This document shows positions 2,491 through 52,192 of a stretch of 64,000 nt of DNA, in pieces (the first letter of the stretch is position 1; each line of letters opens with the position of its first letter). The notes beneath the pieces are model-generated. The model searched no databases. It saw only the letters and a list, made by a program, of their open reading frames with translations, and was not told the DNA's origin. Source of the stretch: Chara braunii (lineage: Eukaryota; Plantae; Charophyceae); NCBI GenBank assembly GCA_003427395.1, contig BFEA01000017.1, forward strand, positions 1,829,791 to 1,893,790, in the 5' to 3' direction. The position numbers and the translations under genes are program-made.

Positions 2491-5400
2491 GTCAGATCAA
2501 CCATTAAGAAAGGACATTGCAAAAGCTTGGGAGTGTGACTCTCTCATCCTCCCTCTTGGGCTGCATATTGTTCTCATGTCCACTTGAATGCATTGTGCAT
2601 TGACGATTCGGGGATATGACTCCTTGTATACTATCGCAGTTGTTATTTCCACTGTGATGCACTTAGTGCATGATGCATTGATTCGTAGTCTAAGCTTCAT
2701 CGTTCTGTGTAATTTAAACTTAATTTTCATTGAGCATTCACGGGATGTGGAGTGTTGGATGTTCGTTTCTTATTGGAGAACCTGTGAGGCTGTGTGCTGA
2801 AGCATCTGATTCAGATTGTCCCTCAATTCATGCAGCTCGTTTTGGAGATGCCCTCTACTTGAACACGTTCTGATCTGGGATGTGGGTTGTCCTTTCTTAT
2901 TTAGTTTCTTTTTCACAATAGTTTGGTCTGTTTCTTAATCTGTGCATGTCACCCTTGCGCAGCGGCCAGTCAATCGTCTCTGTATCGTTCTCTGTATCGT
3001 TCCGATTTTAACGAATGGCGTGAAGCACTGGGATGTGGCTTGTCTGACCACTGGGCGAGAGCTATTTTTGTGGCCAGGAAAATTGTTTGATGATCTCTTT
3101 CAGGCAACAATGTTGAGCATCGAGCGCATGGACCTAGAATGAATGAAGGAAGGGTCTTTGATCTTTTGTAACAATGTAAAGTCCATTTTGTCATATGTGC
3201 ACACTGCATAGGGATAATCTTTTGTGAAATCCAACTTTTGTGTAGCTACTATGATTCTGAGAATTTCTGACAATTTTTATGATTTTTTTTAGTTAGAAAA
3301 TTTTAATCTCTTTGCATTCGGGATCGCTGGGTTGTGAGATCCAACTTTTGTGTAGCTACTATGATTCTGAGAATTTCTGACCATTTTTTTTTCTTCTTAA
3401 AATCTCTTTGCTTTCGGGATCGCTGGGTGTCTCTGCAGGTTTTTGTGGAGGCACTCCCAAGGGTCCCAGTTCACCGCCGTCTTCCTCTGGTTGTCAGTCT
3501 CCTGAGGTGAGAATGCTCTCCATGCCTTGCATAACTGTTACAGTTTTTTCCTTCCCCTGGACTGAGGAGGTTTGGAAAAACAAGCCATCGTTTGGAGGAC
3601 AGGTACTGGGCAAGATGGGTCACCCACGCGGTCTGATGATTGTCGCTGTACCTGTCCTCCAAACGATGAGTTAGAAAGGGCGAAAGGGAAACTGTCCTCC
3701 AACCCTGTGACAATCAGACCATGTGCAGTTTCCCTTTCGCCCTTTCCTCAACCCTTCGACAATCAGACCACGTGCAGTTTCCCTTTCGCCAGGAAAAATT
3801 GACAAAACACTCTCACATGACTAGTAGAAGCACACCATTTGTTCGAGGCTAGGAAGCACACCATGAGTTAGAGGCTAGGAGGCGTGTAGGTTTGTTCAGT
3901 CTGTTGGCATATATAAGAGATTGAAATGACTGACTATATGCTAAGCTTCATAGGAGATGACATGGGGGTGATAAGAATGGCTGGGAACAGCCCTTAGAAG
4001 GGAAGTATCTAGCAAATTCATGACTTTCCAACATTGCCGGTGGAAAAGGAACCGGGCTGAGGCCCCTTTAGAAGGGAGAGATGGAGCCAGGCCCATGAGG
4101 ACCTGTTTTCTTTCTTAAATTTGTTATTATTATATTATTATTATTGTTATTATTATTATTTTTGAAAAAGAAGAAAGGAAGTATGTAGAAATGGGCTGCA
4201 TAGGGGATGTGGGGTGGTGAGAGAAGTAAGTGACGAGCGTCACAACAACTTGGTAGATGGATTGAAAGGCCGGCTCTGGGCGTGGGGTGCTGAATTTAAG
4301 GTTTCATTTCTGCATGACAATCCCTGAAAAGTTGGATAGCTTTTTTTTTTAGGGGGGGGGCAGGGCGGCAGGGGGACTATTTCTCGATTTATGTGTGTCA
4401 TCCTTGCACAGGGGCCATGCTACTCTTCTCTGTATCGTTCCAATTTTGAACGGATGTCCTGAATGACGGATGGCTTTATTTTGGACATTCCTATGATGAA
4501 TGTGTTGTCGGACGGCTATTCACGTCAAGGTCGCGGTGGGCATTTCTATGCCTTTCGCAGGAGAAAGGGCGAAAATAAAACTGCACGTGGTCTGATTGTC
4601 GCAGGGTTGAGTAGCGGTTACCTTGTTTTGCTGGCAGTTATGAAGGGCACCTACATTCCCGATGGTTGTGATTGCGTTTTTCCTGTGCTTGCCTTCGTTC
4701 GGAGCGTACAATGGCAGACATGCACAAGCGTTTTGAAATGAAGAGGGAGCAAGGGAGGGGCTGCAGGGTTCTTCTATTTAGCCTCGTTTTGCTTATGATG
4801 ACCCCTCAGATCTCGGAAGATGAGGCTGCACTGACACGTATGACTACATTACTGGCCATTGCTGTATCCGCCATCTTGCTGTGGATCATGCGTGGTCTTT
4901 ATGAAACTGCCTCCTTGCCGTGTCGCGGTATTGTTAGGAAGTGGGTCCAAACAACCTTTTGGGCAGTAGAGGGACTTCCTCCCTTCGCACTGACCCCTTT
5001 CCAAAATCAAGTCACAAAGCATAGACCCTTTTGCTTCCAGGGTTGCATGTTAGGGTCAAAGAGTGCCACCGCAAGTGGGCTTCACATGACCCTCTAATAC
5101 CCTCATATGTAAGTTTGACTCTGTTATAAGCCTGCGTGTTCGCCCATGAAAGCAACAGAATGGCCTGTATGACCTGAAAACTGATCTTCAAACCCCATCC
5201 AAAAGCTGACCTCTGTCAGGCCATGGATTTGCATCTGGCCACACGCATGTGTGCGGCTTGTAGGCAGTGTCAGGGAGAAGGAAAAGGTTGGTAGGAATCG
5301 ACTGACCGAAGGATCCCGACCGGGATCCTCATTGTCCGTGGCATCGTGAGGGCAAACTCTCACACGAGGACTGTTCTGAATGTATCTGGCTGTACCTAAA

Positions 5401-8400
5401 GCGGATTTAGTTGAGAAAACCTCAAGGCGGGTGGGTATACCCAAAGTCTGTTCTAGGAATCTTATCTTTCAGATTCTTTCTGCTAAAAACCGAGGGCGAG
5501 CATGCCCAAAGTCTGTGCCAGTAATCTCGTCTTTCTGCTAAAATGAGTGTGCTGAATGGAACTGTATGATTTGCGTGCATGGCTGTGAATGACGAGAAGG
5601 GCCTTCCTGTTATGCTCCACCGACTGTGTAATCTTATCTTACTGTTTACTACTGTTTAATCTTGTCTTTCTGCTAAAAACAGAGGGCGAGGATGCCCGAA
5701 GTCTGTTCCAATAATCTCGTCTTTCTGCTGAAATGAGTGCGCTGAATGGAACCGTATGATTTGTGTGCAGGGCTGTGAATGAGGAGAAGGGCCTTCCTGT
5801 TATGCTCCACCTACTGTTTGATCTGTACTTGTCAGGGAAGGCGAAGACAGAGTCGCGACCTTCTGTGCTCGACGAGGACGATGATGTTGAGAATGAGGAT
5901 GAAGTGATGGTGGAAAGAGGAGATGGCAGTGAGTGGGTGATGGACTTTGCTGATCTATTGTGCAAGCAGGAGGGTCCAAGATTGCGTCTTCAGGCTCTGG
6001 CAAAATTACTACATGAACATGGATTGAAGTCGGTGATTGCATCAAGCGAGAACAAGGGAATGGTTGAGCGTAAATTGGATGCAGGTGAGAGGAAGGGTGG
6101 AGGAGAGGAGGAGGAGGAGGAGGAGGAGGAGGAGGAGGAGGAAGAGGAGGAGGAGAGGAAGAATGTTGACTGGAGGATGCAGGGGCTGATGATAGGTTTT
6201 GTTGCGGAGCAACTCCGAGCACGTGCCTTCTTGACAACAGGCGAAGTCGCAACAGCAGAGGAGTCACTTCTGCAGGTCAGTAGGCAAACCTTAGTTCCTC
6301 GTGAGGGCCTATAAGGCGAGACGGTGATTATATTGCCCCGGATCCCCTGTGGTCACTTTCACTGTCTTTGATTTCCACCACTCAGTGTCTGAGGGGTCTC
6401 TGACTAAGAGTTTTTCTTTTCTTTTCTTTTTTCTTCCTTCCTGGATTCCTTCTTGATTCTGTATTTCAGCATTTCAACAGTTCAGAGGTGTACCAACTAA
6501 GGTAGGCCCGTTGGTAGAGTAAGACTTTTTGAACTGACCTGCAGACGTAATTTCAGTTTGATACATCCAGCTGCGGCCGTAATTGCAGCCATATAGTTAG
6601 AAAACAGGTCATGAGTTCGAGTACACGAAGGTTTGGGCAGATCTTGTTGAAGGAAAAAGAAGGAACCGAAAGAAGGGACAAAAAGGGAAAACATGTCCGT
6701 GTTCTTAGGTCATGAGATAAAGTGGCCTGCCTGGGCCTCATCAGGCTTTGAGGTACTTGTCGTTTGGGTAAGCGCACAGTGATGGCACATACGCCATTGT
6801 GACTGCGACTGGTTCATCAATTGTGTCGTACTGATAGCATCGTAACTGTGATTTCTTAGGTCATGAGATAAAGTGGCCTGCCTGGACTGCAAGGGCGCTC
6901 AGGGCCTCATGATGCTGTGAGGTACTTGGCGTTCGGGTAAGCGCACACCGATGGCACATACACCATTGTGACTACGACTGGTTCGTCGATAGTGTCGTAC
7001 CGATAGCGTCGTAAGTATGATTTCTTAATAAGAGTGTGTATTGTAATTCTATACCGGGGTTTGTGACTGTGTCACCTGGCCCGGCACAGTGCAGGTGTTC
7101 ATGTTGTAATTCTATACCAGGGTTTATGACTATGTTACCTGGCGCTGCACACCGCAGGTGGTCATACCAGGCCACGCCCGGGCAAGTTCCTTCGCCAGGT
7201 CCTGAGCAGCTCTAGCACAAAAAAAATTAGAAAAATATAAGAAAAGAAATGAAAACTAAACTTGGGTGTCTTGTGTATGAAGGTACTATGACCCGAGTAC
7301 AAACGATGTTTGGCTAAGGGTCACTTTGGTGCTCCTTGGAACGAATTCATAAATCATTTCAACAAAAGATTACCAAGCATTGGATCCTGAATGAACTCCA
7401 TTTCAAGGTGATGAGATAAAATATTCATTGTTCAAGCAAAACTAAACTATTAGTCTATTAGTGAGTAGCATGAAGAAAAATGAATTAGTTAAAGAAAGCT
7501 TAAGAAACATACAAGTTTCCTGCGTTTGAAAAGGAATCACTGGAATCAAAGCAAAATTTTCCAAGGAATCACTGGAATAAAAGCAAAATTTTCCAGTGAA
7601 TTAAAAGTAGCTTTTCGAGACGATGGGAATGTCCAGCCGTGACTTCAAATCTCTCCCTGGCACATGCTGGCCTCATGTAAAGCTGGACTCTGCTGCAGAA
7701 TCCAAGCTCTAAGATTCCCAGTATGAACTTAACTTGTTTCCTGTTTCAATTTCATCATTTCAGGACGTCTCTGTTTTCATTCATTCTCTCTCTCTCTTTT
7801 GACGCTCCTCTAAGTGTGCGTGAATTGTGTCGTTTTACTTATGACTGGTGTTTTCTTTTGTCTTTTCCAGAAGATGGGAATGGCCAGCTGCTGCTTGTTC
7901 TTCATGTGTCCTCTCTTTTTTTTTTTTTTTGGAATGTTCTTCATGTGTTCTGTAAGGGGATGGAAAAGGGATGTCGGCTATGAACCCGCTGAAGTTTTGA
8001 AGTTTGAACTCATCATGCTGAGAGCTGAAGGGTGTTTGCAGTTATTAGCCCAGTTGTGAAATTTTTAGTTGGTTAACTGTTTAGGATGCTCTCCTGCTGT
8101 TGGTTTACCATGTTTTTTTTTTTTTTTGCAGGAGTTCTTTGTCGAGATCTTGGAGCATGTGATGGTAATGGTGACAGCTGGCAGCAAGTACAGGGCCCGT
8201 GGGAGGAACAATTCAGCATATCATGTGAGTGCGGAAGGTGTCTACCATGCAGTAATGCACAGCTTTGAAGCAATAAAACACAACGAATCTGTCCTTAGGG
8301 AGATCCCAAAAAAATGGAACGAAACAGAGAAGATTAGCATGGCCCCTGCACAAGGATGACGCACAAAAATCGAGAAATGGTCCAAATTAAAAAAGGGAAG

Positions 8401-11257
8401 AAAGAAAAAAGCACCATGGGTGGGGTGCTCAGAAGCAGGCCCCTCCCTTGCTTAGGCGGCCAGCGCCACAAGGGGTAGGCAGACCCACTTTTCTTGTCTG
8501 TCTCTCCCCTTTAATCTTCTGTATAAACATGCTTGCCGGTGATAGGCAACCGGACTGATGCCCCCCAGATCAGAAGGGGCTTTTGTTTGTTTGGAAAAAA
8601 AAAAAAAAAAGAATCCACTAAGTAGAGTCAGTGCTCACCATTTAGGTGGCGGGTTGCACCGGCCTTTCTGCGTGCCAATTTTCCTCTCCTTCCCATTGGT
8701 TGTAGGCCAGGTGGCCATGTTTTACAGTAGGAGGGTACGCAGTGTTGATGTCATGTATTGTGTCAGGCAGCAGCCTCTTATTGCTTTTGCTGAAGACCCA
8801 GCGGTGCGAAGGCTGTGTTTTCATCAGGCGGCAGCCCCCATTACGAACCGCCATGGCTGTGGTAAAGCGGGGGGGAGGAAATGGGGTGCCTACTTCTTCG
8901 CGCTTGGCGATTCCCCCCCCCCTTCACCGGAAGAAAGAAAGCGCCGTGCCGTTTTCGAAAGTGCAGCTTGTCCGTTCTGTCAAAAAGAAAGGAAAGGGCC
9001 GTGTGCCAGAGCCCAAGGCCAATACAAATGAGCTAAAGGGCCAGTTGGGCAACCACCCCCCAGGGAGATGCAAAGCCCAACCCGCACACGAATCAGAGTG
9101 GCCAGCCTGACATTGTTTATCTCTGTGCAGTTGTTTAGACGTAGCCGTTCCAGCCCCTGTCTACGCATGTGCACATGCGCCATTAAGGCACACGGGGATG
9201 TGGGCAGCTTGCGCTTAACCACAATCGGTGTGGACAGGCTTGTACATGAGAGGCACTGTAGTAAAAGGGACCCTGCAAGAATAAATAAAAGGGGTACTCC
9301 AGAAAAAGCCAAACTGAAGATGGTAAAGAAAGGGATATACAGATCTATTGTGCTCCATGTTGCTTGCTGTAGAGGTTAAACTGTTTCATTGTTGGAATGA
9401 CTCATCTCAAGTGCGCTTTTTCTATGGCTGCTTGGATTTCGGATAAATCGTCTCGGTGGAACCTGTTGTGGCGAAAATCTATAGAACAAAGCTGTTGTCG
9501 TGAAAATCTATGGAACAAGGTGTGGTGAAAATCTACAACACATCCACACACACTCCGACGAAACAGCCCGGCGCAGTCTTGCTTTTTTTTGTGGAGCTGT
9601 GTAGTGAAGATGACAACACGCCCACACACACACTTGGGATCCATCCCGGCTGTCGCTTGTCCGCCGGCAGGATCAGTTGCGAGCAAAATTTCCAGAAAAC
9701 TGCGTGATGCTGCGCTATGACGACCCGTCTGATGTTCAGCTAGCATGCCATTGGCATTCTTTGTGTCACTATGAGGGCATATAGCCCATGGGCGTTCTCG
9801 TCTTCGTACGTATGACGACAGCCAACATTGTACGCATGTGCAACACCCCTGAGTGGCATGACCAATTTGTAGGCAGCGGCTGGAGATTGGCCCCTTATTC
9901 CGGTCTCTAGCAGTCCTCTCTGCCAGTAACTATCGAGGAGCCAGTGGCGTTCCTCTTTCTCCTGTTCTTCTCCTCCTTCCACTATCCACCTTTCCCTCCG
10001 TTCCGTTTCTCCCGATGTGAAACTACTGAATGCACACAATGAGCATAAATAAGAGAATGACAAAATATAAGGCGCAGGCGTGCTGAAAGGCAAACGGGTC
10101 TGTACACATCCCGTGCTTAAGTACACTTGCACCTGTCAGAATATAACAATGCGATGGCATTTTCGTCAAATCATTAGTTGACCTTGTCTCAAAGCGCGAT
10201 GTGGGTACAGCGTTGGATGATGGGCTCGGTGTACGAGGGGAGAGGGAGGGGCGGAAAAAATACCAGATCAAGACCAGATCAGACCTTCAGGAAACAGGAA
10301 TGGAAATGGCAGTAAATCATGTATGGTCTCTTCCATGCATCATTGTTTATTATGTATGCTATAGACTAACCAACCTTGTGTCCCGTGTGAATGTCTACGG
10401 TTGTGTAAACACGTTTTTCTTGTGCAGGAGGCTATGGATGGGCTTTACAATTTGCTTAGCGTGCTCCATGAAGTGATGCCTATTCATGCTTATATCAAGG
10501 GCATTACTTCTCTCATTAAGCTTGAGAGCAGCAGTATTCGACAAAAGGTAGTTGGTTGGGTGCCATGGATAAAATCACTCCCGAAAATCACCGCATCACA
10601 GTGTGGCTGTCGCAGTTTGATCTCACCTTTTTTTCTCTTCCTTTTTCCTTCTCTCTGCCTCAATAGAACCCGCCACTCGAGAAAAGCTGGGATGAAATAC
10701 ATGTTTTTGCTTAAACGACCGGTACCCCGTCCATGAATCTCACACGCACGCACCCACCAGGTATAATGTGGTGCCACGGAAAGGTTCGACCTACCTGGAC
10801 CAAAAAGCCCCGCGGTGCCCGGTGGGCCCTTGCCTGCGACGGCTTTGAAATTTAGGAGTGGGTGAAATCATTGAAATGTGTGTTGGAAAGAAAAGGCCTG
10901 GAGGTGCTGGTGGTCTTAGGGGTGCGTGGGGTGTGATTTTTTTTTTTTATAAATAATTTTCATTGTGGCTTGAACTGGCTTCTATGTGTTGTCTCCGCTT
11001 TTGTTCCCTATGGGCACCTATGGGTAAATGGCTTTTCTTTTTCCACGTTCTTCAGAAGCTCTTCTTGTTCTTTGTTTTTGTCGTCGCCTTTCATTGTGTC
11101 CTTTCTTTCTCAATGCCAAGGCATCCACCAAATGCATTATTTTGGATATAGCAGGGCCCTTCACTACTTCTCATTTTGACACAATGAACAAAATCATACC
11201 ATAACGAAGTCCCGCTTGAACCACTGATGTATGATATCGTTCGTAGGTGGGATGAGA

Positions 11258-11293
<36 letters not shown>

Positions 11294-14200
11294 GGGAGGG
11301 GTACCTAGCCTTACAGAATCATTTAAGGGGTTGAAGTCGGAGCGTATGATCTCTTTATTAACAAATGTCTGTCTGTAGTACTGTGTTCTATCCAACCAGA
11401 GGAGAAGGAAAGCTGACTGTGATCTTTTCTGGATTTTTTTATTTTTTTGTTTGCCGCGCAGGTGTTATCCATGTTTGCGCTAACTTTGAAGGAGCAAGAG
11501 AAGGAATCTCAGTCAAGGCGGAGGCGAAGAAACCGGCTTGCACAATCGGAACAGGAAAGAGAAGCCGAGGGGAAACTCTATACTTCCTTGGCTGCTGACA
11601 TTGCTAAGCTTCTGCATGGCCCGAAAGCAGATTCGTCGGTGGCAACGAGACAGGTGTGCCTCCCTTCATCGAACTCCTCATTGTTCAAAGCCACAGTCAA
11701 TCTGTTGCTGCCAATCTGCTTGCTTCTTGCGGTTTCTCGGAATAAAAATTCTACTGGTTTGGTTGTCCTGTTCATTTAGTAAACGACGTTCATCCTGTCG
11801 TGTGCCTGCAGATGGAAAGCAAGGCGGTCACAGCTGCCATATCTGCTGCACCCCGCCTCCTCCCCCCCCCCCTTCCCCCGTTTGTCTCCCTCTCCTCTGC
11901 CCTACCCACCCACTCTCCCAAGTCTCATGCTTCAGTTCCGCAGGCACGGACAGACGACATGGTGAGGAATGCGACCTCCGCAACATGTCCGCATGTTTGG
12001 AATCTTCAAAAATGAGATTGCTTACTAGTTCCAGTCAATCCAATCTTAGTTAGTGGTGCAGGGAATGCATTGAATTGCCAATTGGGCAACCAATCTTTTT
12101 TTTTTTTTTTTTTTTTTTCAAGTACTGTCAGGTAACTACTCTATATTTTTCTTTCATCATATCTCCCACTACCTACCTATCTACCTACGTCTATCGCTTT
12201 GTCCATTTCTTTTGCTGCAGGGAGCTTGTGCCCTAAGGACAGTAGTCCACATCTATGCACCGAAGCTGGGCCTGTCCCCTTCGGGTTGGTCCTCAATTCT
12301 GCTCTGTGCGGGGAGCAGTACCCCCGCCTCTAACCCTTGGCACGGGATGGAAGGCCGGCAACAACCCACCACTACCTGCCAGGGGGAGCAAAGCCATCTA
12401 TCTCCGCTGGTGAACCCGAAGCGTGCGGCAGGAGGGCATGGGGAGTGAAATGGATGACATGGGAATTGAGCCCACAACCTCCCGAATGCCACTTACGTGA
12501 TCTACCAACCGAGCTAGTCCGCTTGGCCCGCCAATCTTAGCTTAAACTTTAAGACTATATTTATTTCCCTCCTCTGATTCCGTATGGATTTGAACTCGAG
12601 TCTGTTTGTCAACAGTTCATGGGTGTACCATTCAGCCAAACGGGCTGTGTACTTATGGATTATATTATACATACCAGGGTTGCCAGGCCGAACGTACGGA
12701 GGCCCCTAAGCTGACCCCCGAACGTGGGGCGTTCGGGTCCTCGTATGGGGCCCGAACCTGTGAAGGGGTTCGGACCCCACAAAAAAATATTTGGCACCTA
12801 AAAATTTATTTTTTTTTCTGGATTTTTTTTGGTGAGTTCTTTGTGATGTAAGGTATGTCCCTCTTAATTTTGAAGCTATTCTGTTGAGCCAGAAAAAAAA
12901 AAACAATCAGCAAAGATGGTGGTGTCAAAACTTGCTTGCCCACTCAGTAATTTGTTTTTTCTCTCTTTTCACTTTTTGGTTTTCCTTTATTTCGGGGCAT
13001 GAAAAAAATTATTATCTTTTCAAACTTTATTTGTAGATTCTCTAATAATCTCTATCATGTAAGATACACATGCATAAATTTTCATGGCATTTGTCACAGC
13101 CAAAAAAAAAAAAAAAAATCGCCAAAGCTGGCGGTGTCAAAAACGTGCTCGCCCATTCAATAATTTCATTCTCGTTTTATTCTTTCTATATTTCACTACC
13201 ACTTTTCTGTTAATTTCCGTTTTCCTGACGCCATGTTGTAAACAATGGCTGAATGAAAAGCCTTCAGGTTGGAAGAGCAGTGGAAGAGCTTGCCGAAGCT
13301 TTGCGGCAAACGAACAGTGCACAGTAGAATTGCTTTTGCGGATAATTTTCGGCTAATCAGTGCGCTGTTGACTTGCTCATCTGCAACTTATAACAGAGTG
13401 CATTAGTGGCAATTGAAGTCCTTGCGTGGCGGTTCGGCAAGCTCTCTCGGGAAGTTTTCGTGAAGTGCATCCCAGCAATTGTTGCAAATCTTCATCATGA
13501 AGACAGGTAAGCTGACGTCCTGTTTCTCCACACCTCGGGCTGGGGGAAGGGGGGAAGGGAGGGATCAAACTTCGTTCCTCTGTTTTTTTTTAACTTTTTT
13601 TCCAATTTCCTCCTTATGGAACCCGTAACCCGAAACAAATCCGATGCCCAGGGAGGGATCGAACTTCGTCCCTCTGTTTTTTTAGCTTTTTTTCCAATTT
13701 TCTCCTTATGGAACCCGTAACCCGAAACAAATCCGATGCCCTGCTGCACTCGTCTTATGCCCAAATTTTTCTCCTTCCGATTGTGTGATTTATGTGCAGC
13801 AATTCTCCTCCTCCTCATGCTGAGGTCCAGTGTATTTTGCATATATGTAGGACAGTATTCTGTGTTCATTTGAACGTCCCTGCCGCCCGTCNNNNNNNNN
13901 NNNNNNNNNNNNNNNNNNNNNNNNNNNNNNNNNNNNNNNNNNNNNNNNNNNNNNNNNNNNNNNNNNNNNNNNNNNNNNNNNNNNNNNNNNNNNNNNNNNN
14001 NNNNNNNNNNNNNNNNNNNNNNNNNNNNNNNNNNNNNNNNNNNNNNNNNNNNNNNNNNNNNNNNNNNNNNNNNNNNNNNNNNNNNNNNNNNNNNNNNNNN
14101 NNNNNNNNNNNNNNNNNNNNNNNNNNNNNNNNNNNNNNNNNNNNNNNNNNNNNNNNNNNNNNNNNNNNNNNNNNNNNNNNNNNNNNNNNNNNNNNNNNNN

Positions 14201-19193: not shown

Positions 19194-19257
<64 letters not shown>

Positions 19258-19650
19258 NNNNNNNNNNNNNNNNNNNNNNNNNNNNNNGTGTGTGTGCGCC
19301 TGGTGTTGCTCAGCCTGGTGTAACTGCGTGCAAGACAGGAGGATTGGACTCAAAAGCAGAAGCAGTTCGTACACTGGCTGCGGAGAAAATACCGGTAAGT
19401 TATACCGACCTATTTATCCGCTGAAAGTTTTAACTTTGAACTTTGAAGGTAAAAATTTGTTCTTAGTAATTCTTAGTCTTCAAACTCGTTGAATTTTTTT
19501 ATCTCTGTTTTTCATTACTATTTCAACTTCCAAGTTATTTGTCACTTATCCAGCAGTTTTTCACATCTTTCAGTCTATAGATGCAACGTGAATGACCGAC
19601 CGTTGCCATGTATGTATGTATGTATGTATGTATGTATGTATGTATGTATG

Positions 19651-19682
<32 letters not shown>

Positions 19683-20052: not shown

Positions 20053-20083
<31 letters not shown>

Positions 20084-22870: not shown

Positions 22871-22937
<67 letters not shown>

Positions 22938-23032: not shown

Positions 23033-23126
<94 letters not shown>

Positions 23127-32725: not shown

Positions 32726-32771
<46 letters not shown>

Positions 32772-34125: not shown

Positions 34126-34157
<32 letters not shown>

Positions 34158-35137: not shown

Positions 35138-35172
<35 letters not shown>

Positions 35173-37091: not shown

Positions 37092-37123
<32 letters not shown>

Positions 37124-38561: not shown

Positions 38562-38593
<32 letters not shown>

Positions 38594-40649: not shown

Positions 40650-40737
<88 letters not shown>

Positions 40738-41054
40738 TGTGTGCCCCCCCTGTGTGTGTGTGAAAGTGTGAAAGTGTGTGCTCTGAGAGTTTAAATAAAT
40801 TGATAGAGTATAAATACAAAGAAAAGAAAAACAGATTTGCCTCCTGCTTACCAAACGACTTTCTGTCGTTGACTCCTGAATTGCGATGGCAGGTTGATCG
40901 TTTGAAAGAGGAGTACCTCACCTTGCTTCCAGAAACTATTCCATTCTTGGCGGAGTTGCTGGAGGATGGTGTCTTGGAAGTAGTGGCCAAGTGCCAGCAG
41001 CTTGTAAAGACGCTGGAGACACTAAGCGGCGAAAAACTGTCAGAGTACTTCTGA
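1192..41054 (+). CDS. UTP10: UTP10/HEATR1 (BAP28) U3 snoRNP-associated HEAT-repeat protein; 3' 18 exons, 5' part outside window
   Basis: Manually spliced exons 1192-1287, 3439-3506, 5771-6275, 8132-8224, 10428-10547, 11462-11653, 13397-13506, 15678-15780, 17667-17876, 19314-19394, 22491-22550, 23679-23888, 27972-28123, 28702-28823, 33281-33390, 33651-33878, 37549-37617, 40893-41054 total 2691 nt in one open frame. Family motifs: [27 protein letters not shown] (BP28CT), [40 protein letters not shown]. Confidence 0.93.
1973..2147. mobile_element. TTAA-flanked MITE (TIR ACCAC[C/T]AGTAC); inverted sister copy at 59470-59640
   Basis: TTAA-accactagtac...gtactagtggt-TTAA; interior matches the 59470-59640 copy in reverse orientation. 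Confidence 0.85.
2922..3029 (-). pseudogene. Degenerate U6 snRNA copy
   Basis: Reverse complement aligns to plant U6 (ggaacgatacagaga, cgcaagg) with a small internal duplication. Confidence 0.75.
3439..3506 (+). CDS. UTP10: UTP10 exon: [22 protein letters not shown](R)
   Basis: tgcag acceptor, gtgaga donor; HRRLPL motif. Confidence 0.9.
4341..4467 (-). pseudogene. U6 snRNA retrocopy with oligo(A) tail and TSD
   Basis: Near full-length U6 at 4374-4467; flanking repeat GGAT(A/G)GCTTT at 4334 and 4468. Confidence 0.9.
5771..6275 (+). CDS. UTP10: UTP10 exon with acidic poly-Glu tract
   Basis: Lies within ORF 5763..6314; tgcag acceptor, gtcagt donor; phase matches neighbours. Confidence 0.85.
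6693..7160. repeat. Local tandem duplications (~155-180-bp and ~63-bp units)
   Basis: tcttaggtcatgagataaagtggcctgcc x2; ttgtaattctatacc x2. Confidence 0.75.
8132..8224 (+). CDS. UTP10: UTP10 exon: [31 protein letters not shown]
   Basis: Poly-T tract plus gcag acceptor; gtgagt donor at 8225 (an alternative in-frame donor gtaatg at 8165 is possible). Confidence 0.75.
8291..8388 (+). pseudogene. Full-length U6 snRNA copy with A-rich tail
   Basis: gtccttaggg...acagagaagattagcatggcccctgcacaaggatgac...aatggtccaaatt. Confidence 0.92.
10428..10547 (+). CDS. UTP10: UTP10 exon: [10 protein letters not shown]...SSSIRQK
   Basis: tgcag acceptor, gtagtt donor, 120 nt. Confidence 0.85.
11462..11653 (+). 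CDS. UTP10: UTP10 exon: [10 protein letters not shown]...SSVATRQ
   Basis: gcag acceptor, gtgtgc donor, 192 nt. Confidence 0.82.
13397..13506 (+). CDS. UTP10: UTP10 exon: [15 protein letters not shown]...LHHED
   Basis: aacag acceptor, gtaagc donor; HEAT-like helix. Confidence 0.85.
15073..15156 (-). pseudogene. Degenerate U6 snRNA copy
   Basis: + strand reads tgtcatccttgtgcaggggcgatgctaatcttc, preceded by a T-rich tract. Confidence 0.8.
15678..15780 (+). CDS. UTP10: UTP10 exon: [34 protein letters not shown]
   Basis: ccag acceptor, gtaagt donor; GP.ALP.LP motif. Confidence 0.88.
16659..16795. mobile_element. TTAA MITE, distinct interior
   Basis: TTAA-accaccagtac...gtactggtggt-TTAA. Confidence 0.85.
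17667..17876 (+). CDS. UTP10: UTP10 exon: VGKRAAN...[16 protein letters not shown]
   Basis: aacag acceptor, gtacgt donor, 210 nt; F.SPY motif. Confidence 0.88.
18672..18829. mobile_element. TTAA MITE, most common subfamily
   Basis: Same TIR; interior ggcccagctatcggcc...ggatgaat shared with 47281, 53463, 57322. Confidence 0.82.
19314..19394 (+). CDS. UTP10: UTP10 exon: [27 protein letters not shown]
   Basis: ctcag acceptor, gtaagt donor, 81 nt. Confidence 0.83.
19608..20103. repeat. (TATG)n microsatellites at 19608-19697 and 20039-20103
   Basis: Direct inspection. Confidence 0.9.
20246..22174 (+). mobile_element. Degenerate Penelope-like retroelement (RT remnant) with 14-bp TSD
   Basis: Broken-frame RT motifs [47 protein letters not shown]; TSD CCAA(C/T)GCCTATGAG at 20232-20245 and 22175-22188. 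Confidence 0.75.
21782..21890. mobile_element. TA-flanked Tc1/mariner (pogo-like) MITE of ~110 bp; other copies near 16927-17015, 23472-23579, 32343-32456, 37850-37955, 44330-44400
   Basis: TA-CCGTCTT(T/C)ACCC...GGGTGAAGACGG-TA hairpin with shared core tagctgtattt...gcaact. Confidence 0.72.
22491..22550 (+). CDS. UTP10: UTP10 exon: [20 protein letters not shown]
   Basis: aacag acceptor, gtaagc donor, 60 nt; completes KIP-PRL. Confidence 0.83.
23679..23888 (+). CDS. UTP10: UTP10 exon: RAVGALFEM...FLRAFDMR...SLVMK, followed by a GC donor
   Basis: acag acceptor; AAG|GCAAGT donor joins to [10 protein letters not shown]. Confidence 0.9.
27279..27842. repeat. Minisatellite of 12-14-bp GCTATGTTTGT(G/GG) units
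   Basis: About 45 degenerate units; source of the spurious C/V/M-rich ORFs. Confidence 0.92.
27972..28123 (+). CDS. UTP10: UTP10 exon: [17 protein letters not shown]...SEQL(R)
   Basis: BP28CT signature; acag acceptor, gtgaaa donor. Confidence 0.92.
28182..28219. other. Nextera mate-pair junction adapter (assembly contamination)
   Basis: Exact CTGTCTCTTATACACATCT+AGATGTGTATAAGAGACAG close to an N gap. Confidence 0.97.
28702..28823 (+). CDS. UTP10: UTP10 exon: [13 protein letters not shown]...KKKKRKNE
   Basis: gcag acceptor, gtcagg donor; basic NLS-like stretch. Confidence 0.85.
28900..29211. repeat. Compound tandem repeat (ctgcatttccccctcaacctatttttg / ttcacttcacacccagccgcatt)
   Basis: Several reiterated blocks. 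Confidence 0.85.
29316..29570 (+). pseudogene. Two head-to-tail U6 snRNA copies (29316-29456, 29459-29570)
   Basis: Both begin gtgcttggggacatcc and contain gattagcatggcccct and gagaaatgg; each has its own insertion. Confidence 0.88.
29887..30039. mobile_element. TTAA MITE subfamily shared with 63636-63788
   Basis: ccaccagtacatccagct...cagcaaggctggga. Confidence 0.78.
30141..30237. repeat. 15-bp tandem repeat CTTTTGACCCCTGAA
   Basis: About 6 units. Confidence 0.85.
30606..31369. mobile_element. Solo LTR, 764 bp
   Basis: Perfect 12-bp inverted ends TGTAATGACCTG...CAGGTCATTACA; 4-bp TSD CAGG; removal restores a local ~185-bp tandem unit. Confidence 0.85.
31592..32184 (+). pseudogene. U6 snRNA copy split by a solo LTR
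   Basis: 5' half 31592-31628 ends ...tgatacag; 3' half 32118-32184 reads ...caaggatgacacacataaatcgagaaatgg. Confidence 0.85.
31629..32117. mobile_element. Solo LTR, 489 bp, inside a U6 copy
   Basis: TGTAACGG...CCGTAACA ends; TSD TACAG/TACTG. Confidence 0.8.
33281..33390 (+). CDS. UTP10: UTP10 exon: [36 protein letters not shown]
   Basis: atcag acceptor, gttcgt donor; conserved LHKCFLYDT. Confidence 0.9.
33651..33878 (+). CDS. UTP10: UTP10 exon: [10 protein letters not shown]...[11 protein letters not shown]
   Basis: Acceptor partly hidden in N gap; gtaagt donor. Confidence 0.85.
35775..35944 (-). mobile_element. tRNA-derived SINE; further - strand copies near 915-1045, 6410-6507, 12560-12640, 14215-14285, 26430-26565, 29705-29870, 37315-37495, 39235-39400, 52705-52868
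   Basis: Shared + strand signature tt(c/t)gaact...tcaacagttc...ggtgtaccaactgagcta, often preceded by a poly-T tract. Confidence 0.75.
37040..37141 (-). pseudogene. Young U6 snRNA retrocopy with poly(A) and 10-bp TSD
   Basis: Nearly intact U6 lacking a few 3' nt; TSD CTTTTAAACC at 37030-37039 and 37142-37151. Confidence 0.93.
37145..37277. mobile_element. TTAA MITE, degenerate
   Basis: TTAA-accgccagtac...ctactggcgg. Confidence 0.65.
37549..37617 (+). CDS. UTP10: UTP10 exon: [23 protein letters not shown]
   Basis: tgcag acceptor, gtatgt donor. Confidence 0.88.
38561..38688 (-). pseudogene. U6 snRNA retrocopy with poly(A) and TSD
   Basis: Full-length U6; TSD A(G/A)CCAAAAGT at 38551-38560 and 38689-38698. 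Confidence 0.93.
40893..41054 (+). CDS. UTP10: UTP10 terminal exon: [25 protein letters not shown]...SEYF*
   Basis: ggcag acceptor; highly conserved C-terminal motif; TGA stop. Confidence 0.95.
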   Translation, partial: VDRLKEEYLTLLPETIPFLAELLEDGVLEVVAKCQQLVKTLETLSGEKLSEYF

Positions 41055-43182: not shown

Positions 43183-43253
<71 letters not shown>

Positions 43254-43294: not shown

Positions 43295-43357
<63 letters not shown>

Positions 43358-46300
43358 CATATGTGTGTGTGTGAGTGATGAGCTCGTTGTTTTCTGAGGA
43401 TCGTTTTGTCTTTCAGTAAGTGTCCCAGTGCAGAACGGAATAGGATTTAGCCAACTGCATGTTTTATTAACTTGCTCGATTGGTCAAAACTTCTGTTATT
43501 GGGGTTTAGGGTTTTGGACTTTTGGGAAGTTCTACTGAGAAAAAATAGATGAGTAAGGGTTCTAATTTCTTTTAGGAAAAAAATGGTGTATAACACATCT
43601 ACCGGGGCGAAAACCAAACACTTGTGCACCCATAGGCGGTCGGATTTGGTAGCTGTGATGGAAGCCAAAGACCGAATACACTTCAGAAGACACGTACAGT
43701 AGGGATCCTTTTGTCTTACTGTTAAGCATCTACAAGTTGAGGGACGGTAGAGATCCCTTTGTCGTGCCGGAAAATTTGGACAGAGAGGAGACAGTAGCTA
43801 TCCCTTTTATTTTACTTTATGCGCCTCGCTGCACCGCTCACCAGATGCGTAAATTTCACCCTGAAACGCCGTAAAATACAAAATTATGGCGGCTGTATCT
43901 TTTTCTAAAACACTATCTTCCACATTCTAGCTGGAGAGGTGAATTGTGTGATATCCCAGTGCTTAGAATGTGCAAAGATAGTAACGGTACAGCCGCCAAA
44001 CTTTTGGCAAGAACTGTCATTTTGGAATCAGGTGCTGGGATGGAAGCAAAAGAGTAAACTTCACTTTGAAACAGAGTTGCGCCCCCTCTCCTCGGTGCTC
44101 GGTACGTGTTTAACGACGGCATGTCATAACGAAGCCACCCACTCGCTTTCTCAGAAAACCACCCCTCCGTAGAGGTTTAACGACTGCATGTCATAACGAA
44201 GCCTCCCGAAAGGTAAGGTGGTTTGAAACTTGCAATCGGTGATCCTGACTAGCGTCTTCACTGGTAAGGTGGTTTGAAACTTGCAATCGGTGATCCTGAC
44301 TAGCGTCTTCACTGGAATAAAAAGAAAATGCATGGTCATTATGGCTGTATCTAGACTGAATGGTGCCCCAAATGCAGCTGTAATGACTGGCTGTTCTTTA
44401 TAGATTAGAAGAAGTCTGACCTGTATCCTGCATACTTGTACTTTCCTAAATGTGTCTCGACTACGGCCATACCTGAATGTATGTGACCGCGATGACGTCC
44501 AGAAGCAAGAAAAAAGATGGCAGTGTGAGTTTGCCCTTAGAAGTTAGAATAGCATCCATCGCGTGGATACTTGGCTAGTGTCACGTCAGGGAAACGTTTT
44601 CCGTTCGTTGCACTTTCTTTAGAAGTGTTGGTTGCTCGTGGAGGACATTTTAGTTTGACTTGAGAGGTTGAGAGGGACTTGAGAGCAATTGTACGTTCAA
44701 ATATGCGTACAACCGAATCGGTTTACTTGGTTGTCGTTTGTTCCCTGTAAGGAAACCGGTACGGAGCCACAATTTTAGAATACGTTCGGGCCACTACAGA
44801 AGCGCCCAAATTCATCCAACTAGAAATGCTTCTAACTTTCTACTCTATTTTTTCCCGTGGCCGATAGCTGGGCCAAGTACTGGTGGTTTAAGGAAACCTA
44901 GGGTGGGAAGTGCGGGAAAAGTGTTCCTTCCACTCGTGGAAAAGTGGTGGTGATTGTTCGTCGAGGAGAAAGTTGGTTTGACTTGAGAGGCAGTGTAGGT
45001 TCAAATAAGCGAGCACGATTTTAGAAAACGTACGGGCCACTACAAGAACGCCCAAATTCATCCAACTAAAAATGTTTATACTCTATTTTTTTCTGTGGCC
45101 GATAGCTGGGTTAAAGTCTGGTGGTTTAAGGAAACCTTTTTTATTCCCAGGGTATTGACTGCGCAGGATTAATGATAATTGTGTTTGACAACAGTACACT
45201 TTGGGGCATGGAGCCGCCTCTTTGGCCTGTACCAGGCCGCTAGATCACTCCTGTTTCCGTAGCAGCTAAGCCCTGCTTCTTCTGAATAACACGGCCTCCC
45301 ATGACCAGCTACCAGCCCGCCCTATACCGCTCGTTTAATATGATGCGGGTGTCTTCCATATCCTGCTTGTAGACCTGCCCCGTCCTTACTTGGTCCCTTC
45401 AACCTGTGATCTTGCTCAATCTGCTCCGTACCATTGCACGTCCACCATTGCCAGCTGGTGGTGCGGGAAGGGGTTGGGAAATTCTGTAGGTGGTCGAAGC
45501 AGGATCTCCTGACCCACCGTAGTCCAGTCTCTGAAGCAGATACAGTAGTCTCTGCTGAACTCTTCTTGGTTACACTCCTGGGCGGGCCTGCCGTCCCATC
45601 TGACGAAGGCGATCCAGCCCTTGTTCTCACTGCCCAACCAGTCCCCAGAGAATTGATGAATTGCTTGTATTATGTTTTCTGATGAGTGAAACAACTCCAG
45701 TTTGTTTTTTACTTTTTGCCACTGTAACACGAGTTCTTGTTGTATATATTGCTTTATCATGTATGTTACCTCCTTCCCACCTATGGGGACCCCCTCCATG
45801 GCATGTATACAACGTTTCCTCCAGAGGGTCCACATGACCGCTCTCCTCCTTATCTTAAACATGTTGTTTTCAAAAGTGTTGTCCATGGGCGAGGTCCATG
45901 CCTTGCATAAAATGGCCCTTCAATCCCATGGCCAGGTGGACCCTGTGCCCAACAGGGTCCAGATCCTACCATTGCCATGTGAGGACAACCATCGGGCATT
46001 GCATGGATGTGCTCTATGGTTTTCGGAATCCTAGGGGGGGGGGAAGGCGGTGTGACACGATTTACACCATGGTAGTGCCCACCCCTTCTGCTCTAGATAT
46101 ATACGATCCACCAACCAGTCGTTGGTGGGCAGGCAGAAATGCTCTTTCTGCCACTGCAGTGAGGCCATCTTTTCTGGCCTAGACCTTATGGTGGTGAACC
46201 ATTGGATCGGGCAGATCGCCTCAATCCATACGTTCAAATGAGATCTCCATGGGGCCTTCACTGTTTCTTTTATGTTCACCTTCGTTGCAGCAGCCGCTAC

Positions 46301-46901
46301 GTAGCCTTCACGATTAAGATATACATTCTCCGCCGACCTGATTTTTCGTGTAGGGCTCCACTGCCACTCCTCGGGGTCAAAGGGGAGCTCTGCCATGGGG
46401 ATATTTGGCTCGTATGCGATTCACATATCCTTATCCCTTAGCACGCAGATCCTGTCAAGGTTCGCACTCCTCCACCATCTCATCCTCTGGGGTGTACCGA
46501 TTGAGCACATTATCCTTGCTTAAGTGGAAGTGGTTAACATCTGTTTCGTCCGCATGTGCCTTCGACATTGTGATAGTGCTTTCGTATGACCCTCAGTTGC
46601 GGCACTGTTTTCCAGCCCCTCACCGCGGGGTGTCTGAGCTGCAATACACCCTGCCGCACTGGTTTGTAATCTTCCTGTTCCCAAAAAGGGGCTGACGCAT
46701 CACGTCCTCCCACGTAGTCAGTGGGGGTTTATCAGGCAGCGGGAGTTGGCGGCAGGCCCTTAGAACCCGGGCCTGGAAGTTGTCCCTGGCTAAGTCCTTG
46801 CCGATTATGTCTCAGTTTAAGCCTCGACCAGCTCGAGGGCGCCATGGTATAGTCCAATAACGATCTGTCAGCCAGGTTAATGGGTTAACACCCTGCGGTG
46901 C

Positions 46902-49865
46902 TTATGGGGCCAATCTAGCTATTTGTTCTAGCGTTAGGGCATACCATGGGAGGTGTTGAGTGAAGAGCAGTCTCCTAACCCATTGAACCATTAATGTTGT
47001 GATCTTGGTATCCGGGACTAGAATCCCCAGGCCCCCTTTGTCTTTGGGTTGGATCACCGATGACCAGGCCACCTTGCTAATAACATTCGTGAGCTCACCA
47101 TTGCTTCTCCATAGCAGGGCCGTTGACTGCCGCTTTAGCCATCGGACGGCCTCTTTACTGAGCGCCCAAATTGCAGAGTTGTACCAAAGGGCTGCCAGCA
47201 CTGTGTAGTTGATCGCGAGCGCCCTATGGATTAGGGAGGTGTGTTGATCTTTTCAGTGAACCAATTTTTCTAAAATGGGCTTAAACCACCAGTACTTGGT
47301 CCGACTATCGGCCTTGGAAAAAAATAGAGTAGAAACATTTCTAGTTGGATGAATTTGGACGCTCTTGTACGTGTCCTAAAATCGTGGTGCCGTCAATGGG
47401 CACGCCTTTAGGAAGTACTGGTGGTTTAAGGATGCACTCACAGTTCCATGCAAGCTTAACTAATTCCGTCAACATAATTCCCAATACCTAGATGGGGCCC
47501 CTTTCGGGAGCCGCTTGACCCGTGGCAACTCCGGGGGGCACACCCCTTGATGGTGGATCCACCACCCCAAGTTAACGGTTATATCTGAGACCAATGTGAA
47601 CCGGTTGAATAGTCTCCTGATCTCTTCCATGTTTGCTGCGGTGGCATGCACCATGACTGTCAGGTCGTCTGCGAACATGGAACATACAGGAATTGCATCT
47701 TCAAGGATGGGCGAGATCTGCAACTTCCTCATGTCCTTGTAGGCGCGGAGGTTCGCTGCCAACGCCTCCATCACGATTATAAACAGGAAGGGTGCCAAAG
47801 GGTCCCCCTGGCGGACCGACCGTTGCAGCGGGAAGGCCAATGCTATCCTTTCATTAACTTGGACACTCGTGGTAGCATTATGATGCAATATTTTGGTCCA
47901 GCGTTGGAAAACAGGCCCGATGTTCATTTTTTCCATACATCTGTCCATAAAGAGGCAGTCCACGTGGCCGGAAGCTTTTTCGAAGTCAATGAAGGCCACG
48001 GCCGCATTCTGCTTGTCTTGCCTTGTTAGTTTGAGAAGTTCGTTAGCTAATAGGATGTTGTCCTGGATCTACGCCCTTTGGCAAACCTGGTCTATGTCGG
48101 ATGAAGAATATCGTCCAAGACTGGGATCATACGATTCGCTAGGGCTTTTGCTAGCATTTTATAAACAATTGTAAGCAAACTTATTGGCTGGTAGTTCCTG
48201 ATATCCATTTTGTCCCCCTTTTTGTGCAACAAGGTGAGAATGCCCTGCCCTACTAACTCCCCCATCCGCCCTGTTTCCCACACATGACGATAGAACTCCA
48301 TGAGGTCCAGGGCCCTCTGGGTCCAGAAGGTCTCCCATAACTCCTTAGGGAGCCCATCTATGCTCGACGTCTTCTTTTCATCCATCTGCATCATCGCCAT
48401 CCAGATTTCTTCCTTGGGTAGGGGATGCTGGTCCGTCAGGGCCTTCTTCAATGGTTTCAGTAAGTCCTCAATTTCTTTCTCCCTAACATCCCTCTCCCGT
48501 CGGGCGCACCTTGAAGTAAACAAGTCCTTGAAGAAGGACCTTGCTATCTGCGTGCAATGGGGGGAGGAGTTGATAATATTTTGGTGTCCACTCTGCGGAT
48601 CATATACCGCTTCTATGGTTGTTCTGCATGAGCGTTTATCCATTGTTCCTTCCGTTCGATGTTGTGACAGTCGTCCTCTTATATGTGTGCCCTCCCAGTG
48701 TTGTGTGGCAAAGGTTTGGAGTCGCTGTTGCAGCACATGTATCTCTGAATACTCTTTTGGATGTGTGTGTTGAACACTGTGTGAGTTGTTGGACTGATCC
48801 TGGTGCTCAAGTTGCTGCAGTTGTTGGTGAATTTCCATCTCCTGCTTATGCTTCCTGACTGCTAAAAGTTTAGAATATTCTTGGCATTTTCTACCCAGAT
48901 TGAACAGACCGTTATTAAACCAGTCTATTTTCTGTTGAATGTGTTGCCTTTGCGTGTGCCAAAACGTCCAGCAGTCCGTAATATAACGCTGAAAGGTTTG
49001 CTTCTGCAAGATAGACGCATTGAGTTTATAAAAGCCAGCTCTGCGATTGGGTTTCTTGAGGAAGTACAAAATGACCGTGCACATTTTGTGATCAAGGCCC
49101 GGGTAGGGGCTACTTGGTAAAATTGCTGCTAGAAGCAGAGACCTTCCCAGATTTTCCTAGACCAAGACTAAGTCGATCCTGGATCTCAACCAGCTTTCGG
49201 TCTTGGTCTTTTGTAGGCATGAATAGAACCTTGTATCTGGGTTGAGCTTCCAGAAGGAGTCAAACACGTGTAGTGAAAGGCATAAATCCCTAATTATCCG
49301 CTCCTCCTCCTCCACATACATCGGGGCAGGGGAGGGTGTCCAGCATTGTCCGCCATCTATCCATCGAGCGGTCAGGGGCTGCGTTGCAGTTCCCTGCTAT
49401 AATGATCGGAACCCCGTTCGGGATTTGTGTTGTAAGGTTCTCAAACAACATTTTTCTCTCGCTCACAGTATTGGGGGTATAGATACACAATATACATACA
49501 ATTTCAAGTTCCAACGCGGCCACGATTGAAACCCATCGACCTCCCTCCTGGTCTACCGCCCAATGCACGGGGTCTGCCCGGGACTGCGGGGGAATCCAGA
49601 TGGTCACCCCTGCACTCCCTGGTTTCGGGGCATGGGCCCTGAAGGCCTTCTGTGGCCAGATCATTTTATGGGTGCGGTTGTGCTCCGGGGTGTCCATCAG
49701 GTGAGTTTCCTGGGCGTGGGTATGCCATCTCAGGCCCGCCTCCTTGGTTGAGTCAAAACGTATATCGACATCCCTCTGCGTTATTTTGCTGGGGCCTGTT
49801 GTAATCAAGGCCATAGCTTGTGGCCCTGGCGGTGAGGTATCCGCGATGTGGGATTCCAGCTGCAT
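46902..49865 (-). pseudogene. LINE ORF2 endonuclease-reverse transcriptase, disrupted
   Basis: ORFs 49290..49865, 48092..49084, 47469..47999 and 46902..47201 are collinear pieces of one APE-RT polyprotein. Confidence 0.88.
47281..47429. mobile_element. TTAA MITE inserted in LINE ORF2
   Basis: Perfect TIR; removal leaving one TTAA rejoins the ORF2 frame. Confidence 0.9.
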
Positions 49866-52143
49866 TTGCAGAATTCCTGCTGCTGCCTCAGACTGACTAT
49901 TTTGTGGTTCCGCCCAAAACGACGACCAACCTTGTAACGTGACACCCCCCGTCTGCCATTCGCCACCGGTGACGAGCCCACCTCCTGTTTCCCATTTTTC
50001 TTCCGAACGGGGACGAGTATCATGGCCGCCTGCGACAGGGAGCCAGTATCCCGGCTCATCTCGACCAGGTGCCTAAGCTTTCTTCTTCACACCAGGTCCA
50101 GTGGCGCGTTCTCATCTGGGTCCGGAGGGTCTCGGCCTGGCGGCGAGGCTGGTGGCTGCAGAACCGGGGGGTCTTGTGTTCTCCGGGTCTGTTCATTCGC
50201 TGTCGCAGCTCGGACTCCACCCTGCTCTGCCTCCTTTGCTGCTGCTGCGTGTAGTGGTTGAAATCGTGCAAACACAATTGTGGCCAATCTGTGCCATGCT
50301 TCAGTCCACTTCACCCCCAATTGCAATCCATTTTCCAGTACGTTTTTGAGCGAGGCGCTTGTGTTAAGCATTGGGAATCAATCCAGGTACGTCTTATCCC
50401 AGAAATCGTCGGTGAGGGGGTCGCGTTTTGCTTTCAAATTCTCCATCAGCCAGTCCGCAATGGAAACCAGTTTCTGTTCCACGATCAGGTGCAGCGGCAG
50501 TGCCCCCTCCTCCTCACCTTCCGGGCCTCTTTCCGGGACCAAACCCTGCGGTAGTGTTGTCCGGAAGAGGGTCAACATCCATTGGCTCTGGTCCAAAAGC
50601 CGCATGGAAGGGGTCGGTATCTACCATCTGGCGGACCGGCTGGTTACCCGTCTTTGCCACCCCTAGCGGCCCCGACTCAACCTCCATGTCCCTCTGGCTG
50701 CCCCTCTGCTCCCTCCTGTTCCAACCGCTTAGGGGGGCTGTTTGTTACATAAGCTTGCATTGATGACTCCCCTGCCCGTGTGCTCTGTTCCCCTGCGACC
50801 TCGGCCCTGTTCTGCTGTATCTTCCCTGAGGGGGTTAGGTGCGTCCCTTGGTCCCTGGTGCCATCTGTATCTTTCTCTTCCTGAATGTACCGCTCAGCAG
50901 CAGACCTTGGGATGCGGGAACTGTCATTGTCATCCCACAACAGCCCAGGTCCCGCCTGCTGCTTTTGGACCCAGATTTCCTTCCCTCCTTTCTTCCCCAC
51001 CGTCTTCCAACCTGAATTCTCCCGGCTCCCCTGCGGGGGGCTCGCTTGTATCTCATGCACCTTCTCCTCCACCGGAGCCGGGGGGATCCATGCGTTCGGG
51101 CTGCGCATCTCCCAATCCGGTTCCCCAGTTCTTTTTCGTACCCACCCAATAGGGGTGTCTTCCTTCGTGCGGTCCTCAACATAAACCCAACCTTCATGCC
51201 CCCTGGTCCACTGGAACCTAAGGTGGGAAGTGCAGAAAAAGTCATCCTTTCACTCTGTGCAAAAGTGGTGATTGCTCGTTGAGTAGAAAGTTAGTTCGAC
51301 TTGAGAGGTGATGTAGGTTCAAATAAGCGTACAGCCGAACACGATTTTAGAAAACGTACGGTCCACTACAGGAGCGCCCAAATTCATCCAACTAGAAATG
51401 TTTCTAGTACTTTCTACTCTATTTCTTTCTGCGGTCGATAGCTGGGCCAAGTACTACTGGTGGTTTAAGGAAACCTAGGGTGGGAAGTGCAGAAAAAGTG
51501 TTTGCTTCCACTCTGTGGAAAAGTGGAGTTGATTCCCGAGGAGATGTAGGTCCAAAAAGCGTACAGCCGTCGGTTTACACGGCTGTGGCTCGTTTCCTAT
51601 AAGGGAACCCATGGTGTAAATTGCAGAAAAAAGTATTCGTTCCGCTTTGTGGGAAAATTTATGATTGCTCGTTGAGAAGAAAGAAAGTTTCACGTGAGAG
51701 GATATAAGGTCTCAAATAATAAGTGAAGAGCCGAATCCGTTCACACGAGTTGTCACTCGTTCCCTTTGAGGAAATCTAGGTATACACTTATTGTGGTCTT
51801 CATGTGGTCTTCCTTCGGTGTATTTAGCGGTCTGCCTATACCAGCACCTCAAGATATCTCAGGGGTTGTTTGTTGATGTAAAAAAAAAAAAAAAAAGAAG
51901 CCGAAGATGACGACGAAGACGAAGACGATGAAAGTCTTTTTATAATTCTTCGGTTGGTAGGGCACAACACTCACACAGGGACTTTTTCCACTTCTCTCCT
52001 CTTTGGGCGTAATTTCTGTCAGGTTCATCCAGGTCACGTTGGAAAAGTGGTTATATGCACCCAGGAAAGGTCCTACTGTCAGTATGCCCTTATTTCAAGT
52101 TATTTGGGTATTTCCCTCTGTTCTATTTATGAACTGCTGTGCT

Positions 52144-52192
52144 GTCCTTGGGGTCATACAGACAAGGAAGATTAGCATGGCCCCTGTGCAAA
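52144..52192 (+). pseudogene. Partial, internally deleted U6 snRNA copy
   Basis: gtccttgggg...atacaga...gaagattagcatggcccctgtgcaa. Confidence 0.75.

Follow-up and report, generated by a model that had tools for sequence, protein, structure and literature searches.

How ten copies of U6 small nuclear RNA (snRNA) came to lie within 64 kb of an algal genome is the question raised by a stretch of Chara braunii DNA (GenBank assembly GCA_003427395.1, contig BFEA01000017.1, positions 1,829,791 to 1,893,790), hereafter the window (64,000 nucleotides). A first-pass annotation had listed these copies on both strands, placed nine of them in introns of UTP10, and offered two origins: mobilisation of genuine U6 RNA in trans by long interspersed elements (LINEs), or a self-propagating short interspersed element (SINE) derived from U6. 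We favour the former, with a probability of about 0.65: the copies would be processed U6 pseudogenes made by LINE trans-mobilisation of genuine U6 RNA.

Scanning the window with cmscan returned seven U6 matches above the Rfam gathering score, three weaker ones and one U2 match. An nhmmer search, with a profile built from the four best U6 copies, gave 11 pieces (E-values 2e-5 to 1e-30) covering all ten coordinates of the first-pass annotation. The count stays at ten because the eleventh (32117-32178) belongs to the copy at 31592 as its 3' half. The copies at 29316 and 29459 are head-to-tail neighbours with three derived bases in common (C3G, C7G and G17T). They are most likely one tandem-duplicated insertion, and we therefore count about nine insertion events in the window rather than ten. 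As had been claimed, nine of the ten copies lie between collinear exons of UTP10, on both strands, while the copy at 52144 lies downstream of the gene. UTP10 was identified by its BP28CT domain and by exons that match in collinear order between 1189 and 41051, and the gene model was checked exon by exon against homologues; a search for a full-length UTP10 protein from the same genome returned none. No assembly gap falls inside a copy (one N closes the A-tract of the copy at 38561), and the UTP10 exons flanking all six listed gaps keep the residue order of the homologues without a jump; to judge by these exons, the sequence order across the gaps looks right. The window also holds a full-length U2 snRNA copy that was absent from the first list. 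Altogether, 14 U6 copies were examined in detail, the ten in the window and four from other loci of the genome.

Without exception, the 14 copies have U6 +1 as their first nucleotide, and they stop at various 3' positions between about nucleotide 51 and the native T-run near nucleotide 100; even the three youngest copies end at different places. Most units end in an A-rich tail, and the tails are plain A-rich runs. We searched for target-site duplications (TSDs) and scored them against 2,000 random flanks per copy (significance at p<0.01). A significant TSD of 8-16 bp was found in six of the 13 U6 units tested, with unrelated target sequences. The three copies previously named as bearing a TSD and an A tail all passed (4341-4467, 15 bp with two mismatches; 37040-37141, 10 bp; 38561-38688, 8 bp; p ~0.007 each), and they are not the only ones: those at 15177 (15 bp, two mismatches, p=0.009) and 3028 (16 bp, one mismatch, p=0.0005) were significant as well, and a copy at another locus (L003) has a significant 10-bp TSD directly after its 3' truncation. 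The TSDs directly adjoin U6 +1 and the end of the tail, with no long terminal repeat (LTR) sequence carried along. Among the window copies, the random-flank test gave no significant TSD at 8291, at the 29316/29459 pair or at 52144; for the 31592 copy, an assembly gap at 32205, ~20 nt past its end, covers the 3' flank where any TSD would lie. Downstream flanks match neither one another nor LINE ends, and none of the 14 copies continues into LINE sequence. The youngest copy (37055-37141) sits in the end of a repeat resembling a miniature inverted-repeat transposable element (MITE), the only one of the 14 so placed.

The consensus of the 14 copies is a plain, unrearranged U6 with its motifs intact. 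Single copies diverge from it by 1% to 21%, and CpG sites are mutated at 24% versus 9% elsewhere; on the evidence of their sequences, the copies have decayed neutrally over a long period. U6 is transcribed from an external type-3 promoter (PMC10533338). In consensus-pattern scans, the youngest copy had neither an A nor a B box, and a downstream B box was absent from the surroundings of all copies; a scan with angiosperm motifs, which may not apply to Chara, found no upstream sequence element (USE) or TATA box near any copy. Each copy is truncated, interrupted or 6-21% diverged, and the only one to retain the T-run has a 41-nt insert. The earlier statement that flanks are unrelated was borne out for the 300-bp flanks of the dispersed copies, but not for the 31592 copy, which is preceded by an inverted piece of UTP10 exon and splice site. 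This piece is the sole shared upstream segment and is not a promoter, in line with the earlier remark that no common upstream promoter was evident.

TSDs, A tails and resident poly(A) LINEs all support the proposed retroposition by LINE machinery. The LINEs are recognised by RVT_1 and zf-RVT matches and by a 51-nt poly(A) end, and the closest relatives of the window LINE (72-73%) are in Chara braunii. There is, in addition, a pure poly(A) insert (55693-55757) with a perfect 15-bp TSD, which together with the poly(A) LINEs shows machinery that takes any A-tailed RNA; we infer that an L1-like LINE is the candidate for having done the copying. U2, a Pol II snRNA, was retrocopied in the same window. 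In the mechanism that we propose, the ORF2 protein of an L1-like LINE would nick the genome and reverse-transcribe cellular U6 RNA in trans. Templates that had been 3'-trimmed and oligo-adenylated, as decay intermediates, would give copies with an A tail and a TSD; internal priming would alternatively give 3'-truncated copies with a TSD, both routes having been put forward for mammalian U6 copies. Each copy would lose the upstream type-3 promoter, be dead on arrival and decay neutrally.

The copies are not all of one type. Position 73 is A in about seven to eight of 12 copies and G in four. The A73 copies are younger (mean divergence 8% vs 14%, p=0.03), and their number is unlikely to reflect independent CpG decay (binomial p=2e-4); decay at this site does occur, as the tandem pair 29316/29459 differs there. 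A 4-nt insertion after the ACAGAGA box (+4) is found at three loci (the 29-kb pair, 52144 and 15177), accompanied by C7G in the pair and at 52144. We considered an insertion hotspot at the box and set it aside: counting events solely by position gave p=0.15, and common descent is a simpler account of the +4 copies. The +4 copies point to a variant source, suggesting a separate lineage, and this source was probably not a working U6 because the insertion breaks the conserved spacing of the Rfam model. Young A73 copies keep the canonical spacing of the catalytic motifs, and their source would be a working U6 gene. The copy tree proposed earlier to tell a star from nested subfamilies gave a mixed answer: most changes are private to single copies, yet the A73/G73 and +4/C7G structure means that the set (n=14, a number too small for a dependable tree) departs from a pure star. 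Under trans-mobilisation, the source would have shifted over time, older copies being G73 and some of them +4, younger ones coming from an intact-looking A73 gene, with a minor variant source contributing some copies.

The abundance of U6 copies was then placed in a genomic context with seven independent loci of the same assembly (186 kb without N). Four U6 copies were found there, a density of 21/Mb (95% CI 6-55) or roughly one every 46 kb; the window has 159/Mb (76-292). The comparison loci were picked via LINE proteins and are repeat- and rDNA-rich, and the window itself was chosen for its density. The family is therefore not a local cluster; the first-pass expectation of a very large family is supported, whereas its figure of one copy per ~6 kb does not extend to the independent loci. 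The sequenced genome is reportedly ~1.4 Gb, from which we extrapolate ~30,000 U6 copies genome-wide (range 10^4-10^5). The window alone would imply at least 200,000, a figure that overstates abundance. One of the other loci (L004) carries a second head-to-tail U6 pair (17219/17404). Exact-pattern scans of metagenome and viral contigs for the Chara U6 5' end gave nothing, and no report of a U6 expansion in a plant or alga was found in the open-access literature, most subscription papers being outside this coverage.

Two sites in the window show U6 next to other spliceosomal or splice-site sequence. The inverted piece before the 31592 copy is 42 nt long and corresponds, at 38/42 positions, to the end of UTP10 exon 37549-37617 plus the adjoining 5' splice site. 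This match (31532-31573 vs 37589-37630) was tried as a shared promoter and rejected: it is the inverted exon/splice-site piece, and it folds no better than shuffled sequences. The exon itself carries an 11-nt stretch complementary to a U6-like 5' end. A 489-bp insert (31629-32117) splits the 31592 copy at its ACAGAGA box; no second copy of this insert was found in the window or the fetched loci. At the other site, the U2 copy lies 125 nt from the U6 fragment, and a duplicated pyrimidine-rich segment flanks the U2 copy with one unit on each side (52115-52240 and 52624-52680).

Several observations weigh against genuine U6 RNA as the template. The shared derived states (+4/C7G and A73/G73) imply more than one source; the working U6 gene is not among the 14 copies, and A73 could mark a pseudogene master; four loci among the copies tested have no TSD; the promoter scan relied on angiosperm motifs; and a density far over that of mammals calls for an extra factor beyond the mechanism. 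The very high density would fit a true U6-derived SINE, in which an internal Pol III promoter drives transcription of the retrocopies themselves and these give rise to further copies; the frequency of A73 and the younger age of the A73 copies resemble subfamily succession, and the +4 variant recurs at three loci. We nevertheless prefer trans-mobilisation because the copies have mixed 3' ends and lack internal A and B boxes, a LINE-like tail and an added body, and because U2 was copied in parallel. The canonical motif spacing of young copies also argues against a SINE, and no internal snRNA promoter is known (PMC4494074), so that this half of the original pair of proposals is quite unlikely, and the trans-mobilisation half is retained. 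It is rather unlikely that most of the copies stem from one or a few non-functional U6 variants that persisted behind a duplicate of the external promoter or were carried by LTRs or other transcribed elements. The +4/C7G lineage is what such secondary masters would leave, but +4 occurs in only three of ~12 independent loci, among the older ones, the 4-nt insertion resembles a local duplication that could recur, and the TSDs lie at U6 +1 and after the tail. Spread by segmental or tandem DNA duplication, or the presence of real genes with promoters, is very improbable. The two head-to-tail pairs, the abundance of small tandem duplications in the genome and the four loci without a TSD would fit duplication, whereas the mutually unmatched flanks, TSDs and A tails largely rule out segmental duplication of the dispersed copies, and the truncation or mutation of every copy argues against real genes.

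A further possibility can be added to LINE trans-mobilisation, namely that the reverse transcriptase (RT) takes U6 and U2 at spliceosomes on nascent transcripts, so that copies accumulate in introns of expressed genes; now and then, a process such as twin priming on U6 and pre-mRNA would link U6 to splice-site sequence from the host gene itself. Consistent with this, nine copies lie in 40 kb of UTP10 versus one in the 23 kb downstream and four in the 186 kb of repeat-rich loci; the UTP10 exon/5' splice site at U6 +1 of the 31592 copy has the inverted orientation expected of twin priming; U6 and U2 copies adjoin at 52 kb; and the 27-kb UTP10 locus of a liverwort has no U6 copy. However, a high density was the reason for choosing the window, the repeat-rich loci consist of young DNA in which old copies are diluted, the copies occur on both gene strands, and the inverted piece, a single case, fits DNA-templated repair from 6 kb away equally well. 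We consider capture at spliceosomes improbable. The combined proposal, that Chara holds the first U6-derived retroposon family with non-functional secondary masters (+4) and snRNA capture at spliceosomes, with U6 fused to a host 5' splice site, is likewise unlikely.

Table 1. Coordinates of the U6 and U2 copies, the host gene and associated elements in the window.
Feature	Position	Strand	Remarks
U6 retrocopy	2876..3044 (U6 part 2918-3028)	-	21% diverged; 12-nt internal duplication; A-rich tail; 16-bp TSD; G73 type
U6 retrocopy	4334..4482 (U6 part 4373-4467)	-	8% diverged; C-rich then A tail; 10-15-bp TSD
Full-length U6 copy	8291..8410	+	10% diverged; A-rich tail; TSD not significant; ~65 nt past putative UTP10 5' splice site
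U6 retrocopy	15022..15192 (U6 part 15075-15177)	-	17% diverged; +4 nt after ACAGAGA box; A-rich tail; 15-bp TSD
U6 copy, tandem pair unit 1	29316..29456	+	Native T-run end; +4 variant; 41-nt insert partly like own upstream flank
U6 copy, tandem pair unit 2	29459..29570	+	C3G, C7G, G17T as in unit 1; +14 nt at ACAGAGA box
Inverted 3' part of UTP10 exon 37549-37617 and its 5' splice site	31526..31591	-	Head-to-head with U6 +1
Single U6 copy in two parts	31592..32184 (31592-31628 and 32118-32184)	+	nhmmer, cmscan
Solo-LTR-like insert, 489 bp	31629..32117	.	TG...CA ends; 7/8 terminal inverted match; 5-bp duplication, 1 mismatch
Youngest U6 retrocopy	37030..37151 (U6 part 37055-37141)	-	1% from consensus; 3'-truncated near nt 87-89; poly(A); perfect 10-bp TSD
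U6 retrocopy	38553..38698 (U6 part 38593-38688)	-	6% diverged; 31-nt poly(A); 8-bp TSD
U6 fragment, internally deleted, 3'-truncated	52144..52192	+	+4 variant with C7G; within one copy of locally duplicated pyrimidine-rich segment
Full-length U2 snRNA retrocopy	52317..52597	+	35-nt internal tandem duplication; A-rich tail; 5-bp flanking repeat, not significant
Host gene UTP10/HEATR1, 3' third	1189..41054	+	~20 exons; BP28CT domain
Broken L1-like LINE	45135..51200 (ends approximate)	-	RT domain; short A tail; candidate source of retrotransposition machinery
5'-truncated L1-like LINE	56377..58922 (start approximate)	+	zf-RVT domain; 51-nt poly(A)

Other elements crowd the same DNA. A MITE-like family with long terminal inverted repeats is present in many copies (16660-16795, 18672-18820, 44780-45130, 47280-47430, 53460-53620 and 57322-57490), several of them beside or within LINEs. 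UTP10 introns hold broken RT-like open frames, possibly Penelope-like (20230-21760, with 20190-20250 repeated at 22470-22530), and ~44 copies of an 11-bp minisatellite (27272-27842); an array of 15-bp units lies at 30140-30237. At 28182-28219 we recognised a palindromic Nextera mate-pair junction adapter, an assembly artefact of which locus L002 has several more; the adjacent 28220-28327 repeats sequence from 16468 onward and from 16380 onward, making the local assembly suspect. The other loci of the assembly have repeats and the adapter artefact in common with the window. An AT-rich segment (59690-60070) is organelle-like in appearance, its predicted translation resembling NADH dehydrogenase subunit 5. 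LINE RT genes lie beside or within C. braunii rDNA units at two loci (L006 16787-21431 and L007 13057-13638); the 28S match in L007 is broken beside the RT gene, which possibly belongs to an rDNA-targeting element.

The mechanism is already known; its scale here is unusual, an estimated 10^4-10^5 copies versus at most ~2,850 in mammals, with a variant sub-lineage, in a close algal relative of land plants. With so many copies, the family keeps a dated archive of changes in the U6 sequence and of 3'-end processing, and it allows a test of how a short RNA without an internal promoter nears SINE-like numbers, that is, of SINE birth. In practical terms, it confounds U6 gene annotation and the choice of U6 promoters for Chara genome editing.

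Compared with known systems, the family acts like master-gene retroposons, and we do not file it as a SINE because neither an internal promoter nor a fixed or LINE-derived 3' end was found. In the rodent BC1/ID family, one source gene or a small number of them, driven by external promoters and succeeding one another, gave rise to many dead copies; the family is tRNA-derived and keeps internal A and B boxes. Chara has the same master-gene pattern of dead copies, with no such boxes detected in U6. SINEU of crocodilians is likewise short, snRNA-derived and without an internal promoter (Kojima 2015, PMC4494074); it was mobilised by L1-group (Tx1) LINEs, with copy numbers from hundreds to 7,700, and part of its insertions lie in a non-autonomous DNA transposon, a target preference that SINEU shares with the partner Tx1 LINE. 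One Chara copy lies in a MITE-like end, the TSD sequences being otherwise unrelated. However, SINEU has a U1/U2 head, a consensus that is rearranged and differs from the gene, and a 3' portion of non-snRNA origin, while the Chara copies give an unrearranged U6 consensus, carry no added tail and stop at varying 3' points; by head type and consensus, the Chara family is not a SINEU. U6/L1 chimeras also show that U6 RNA is among the preferred cargo of LINE machinery (Moldovan et al. 2019, PMC6789731); in these, a complete U6 including its T-run is ligated to the 3' end of a LINE, whereas no LINE sequence follows the Chara copies. The L1-made U6 pseudogenes of mammals (253-2,849 U6 BLAST hits per genome) resemble the Chara copies in their +1 starts, poly(A) and 3'-truncated classes, variable TSDs, promoter loss and copied U2 (Doucet et al. 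2015, PMC4476161). Unlike these, the 14 Chara copies show no TTTT/A target consensus and no U6/LINE chimera, and include the +4 lineage. In density, mammals reach ~0.1-1.2/Mb (converted here) against ~21/Mb (6-55) in Chara and 159/Mb locally; search thresholds differ between these counts, and Chara appears to exceed mammals at least five to ten times.

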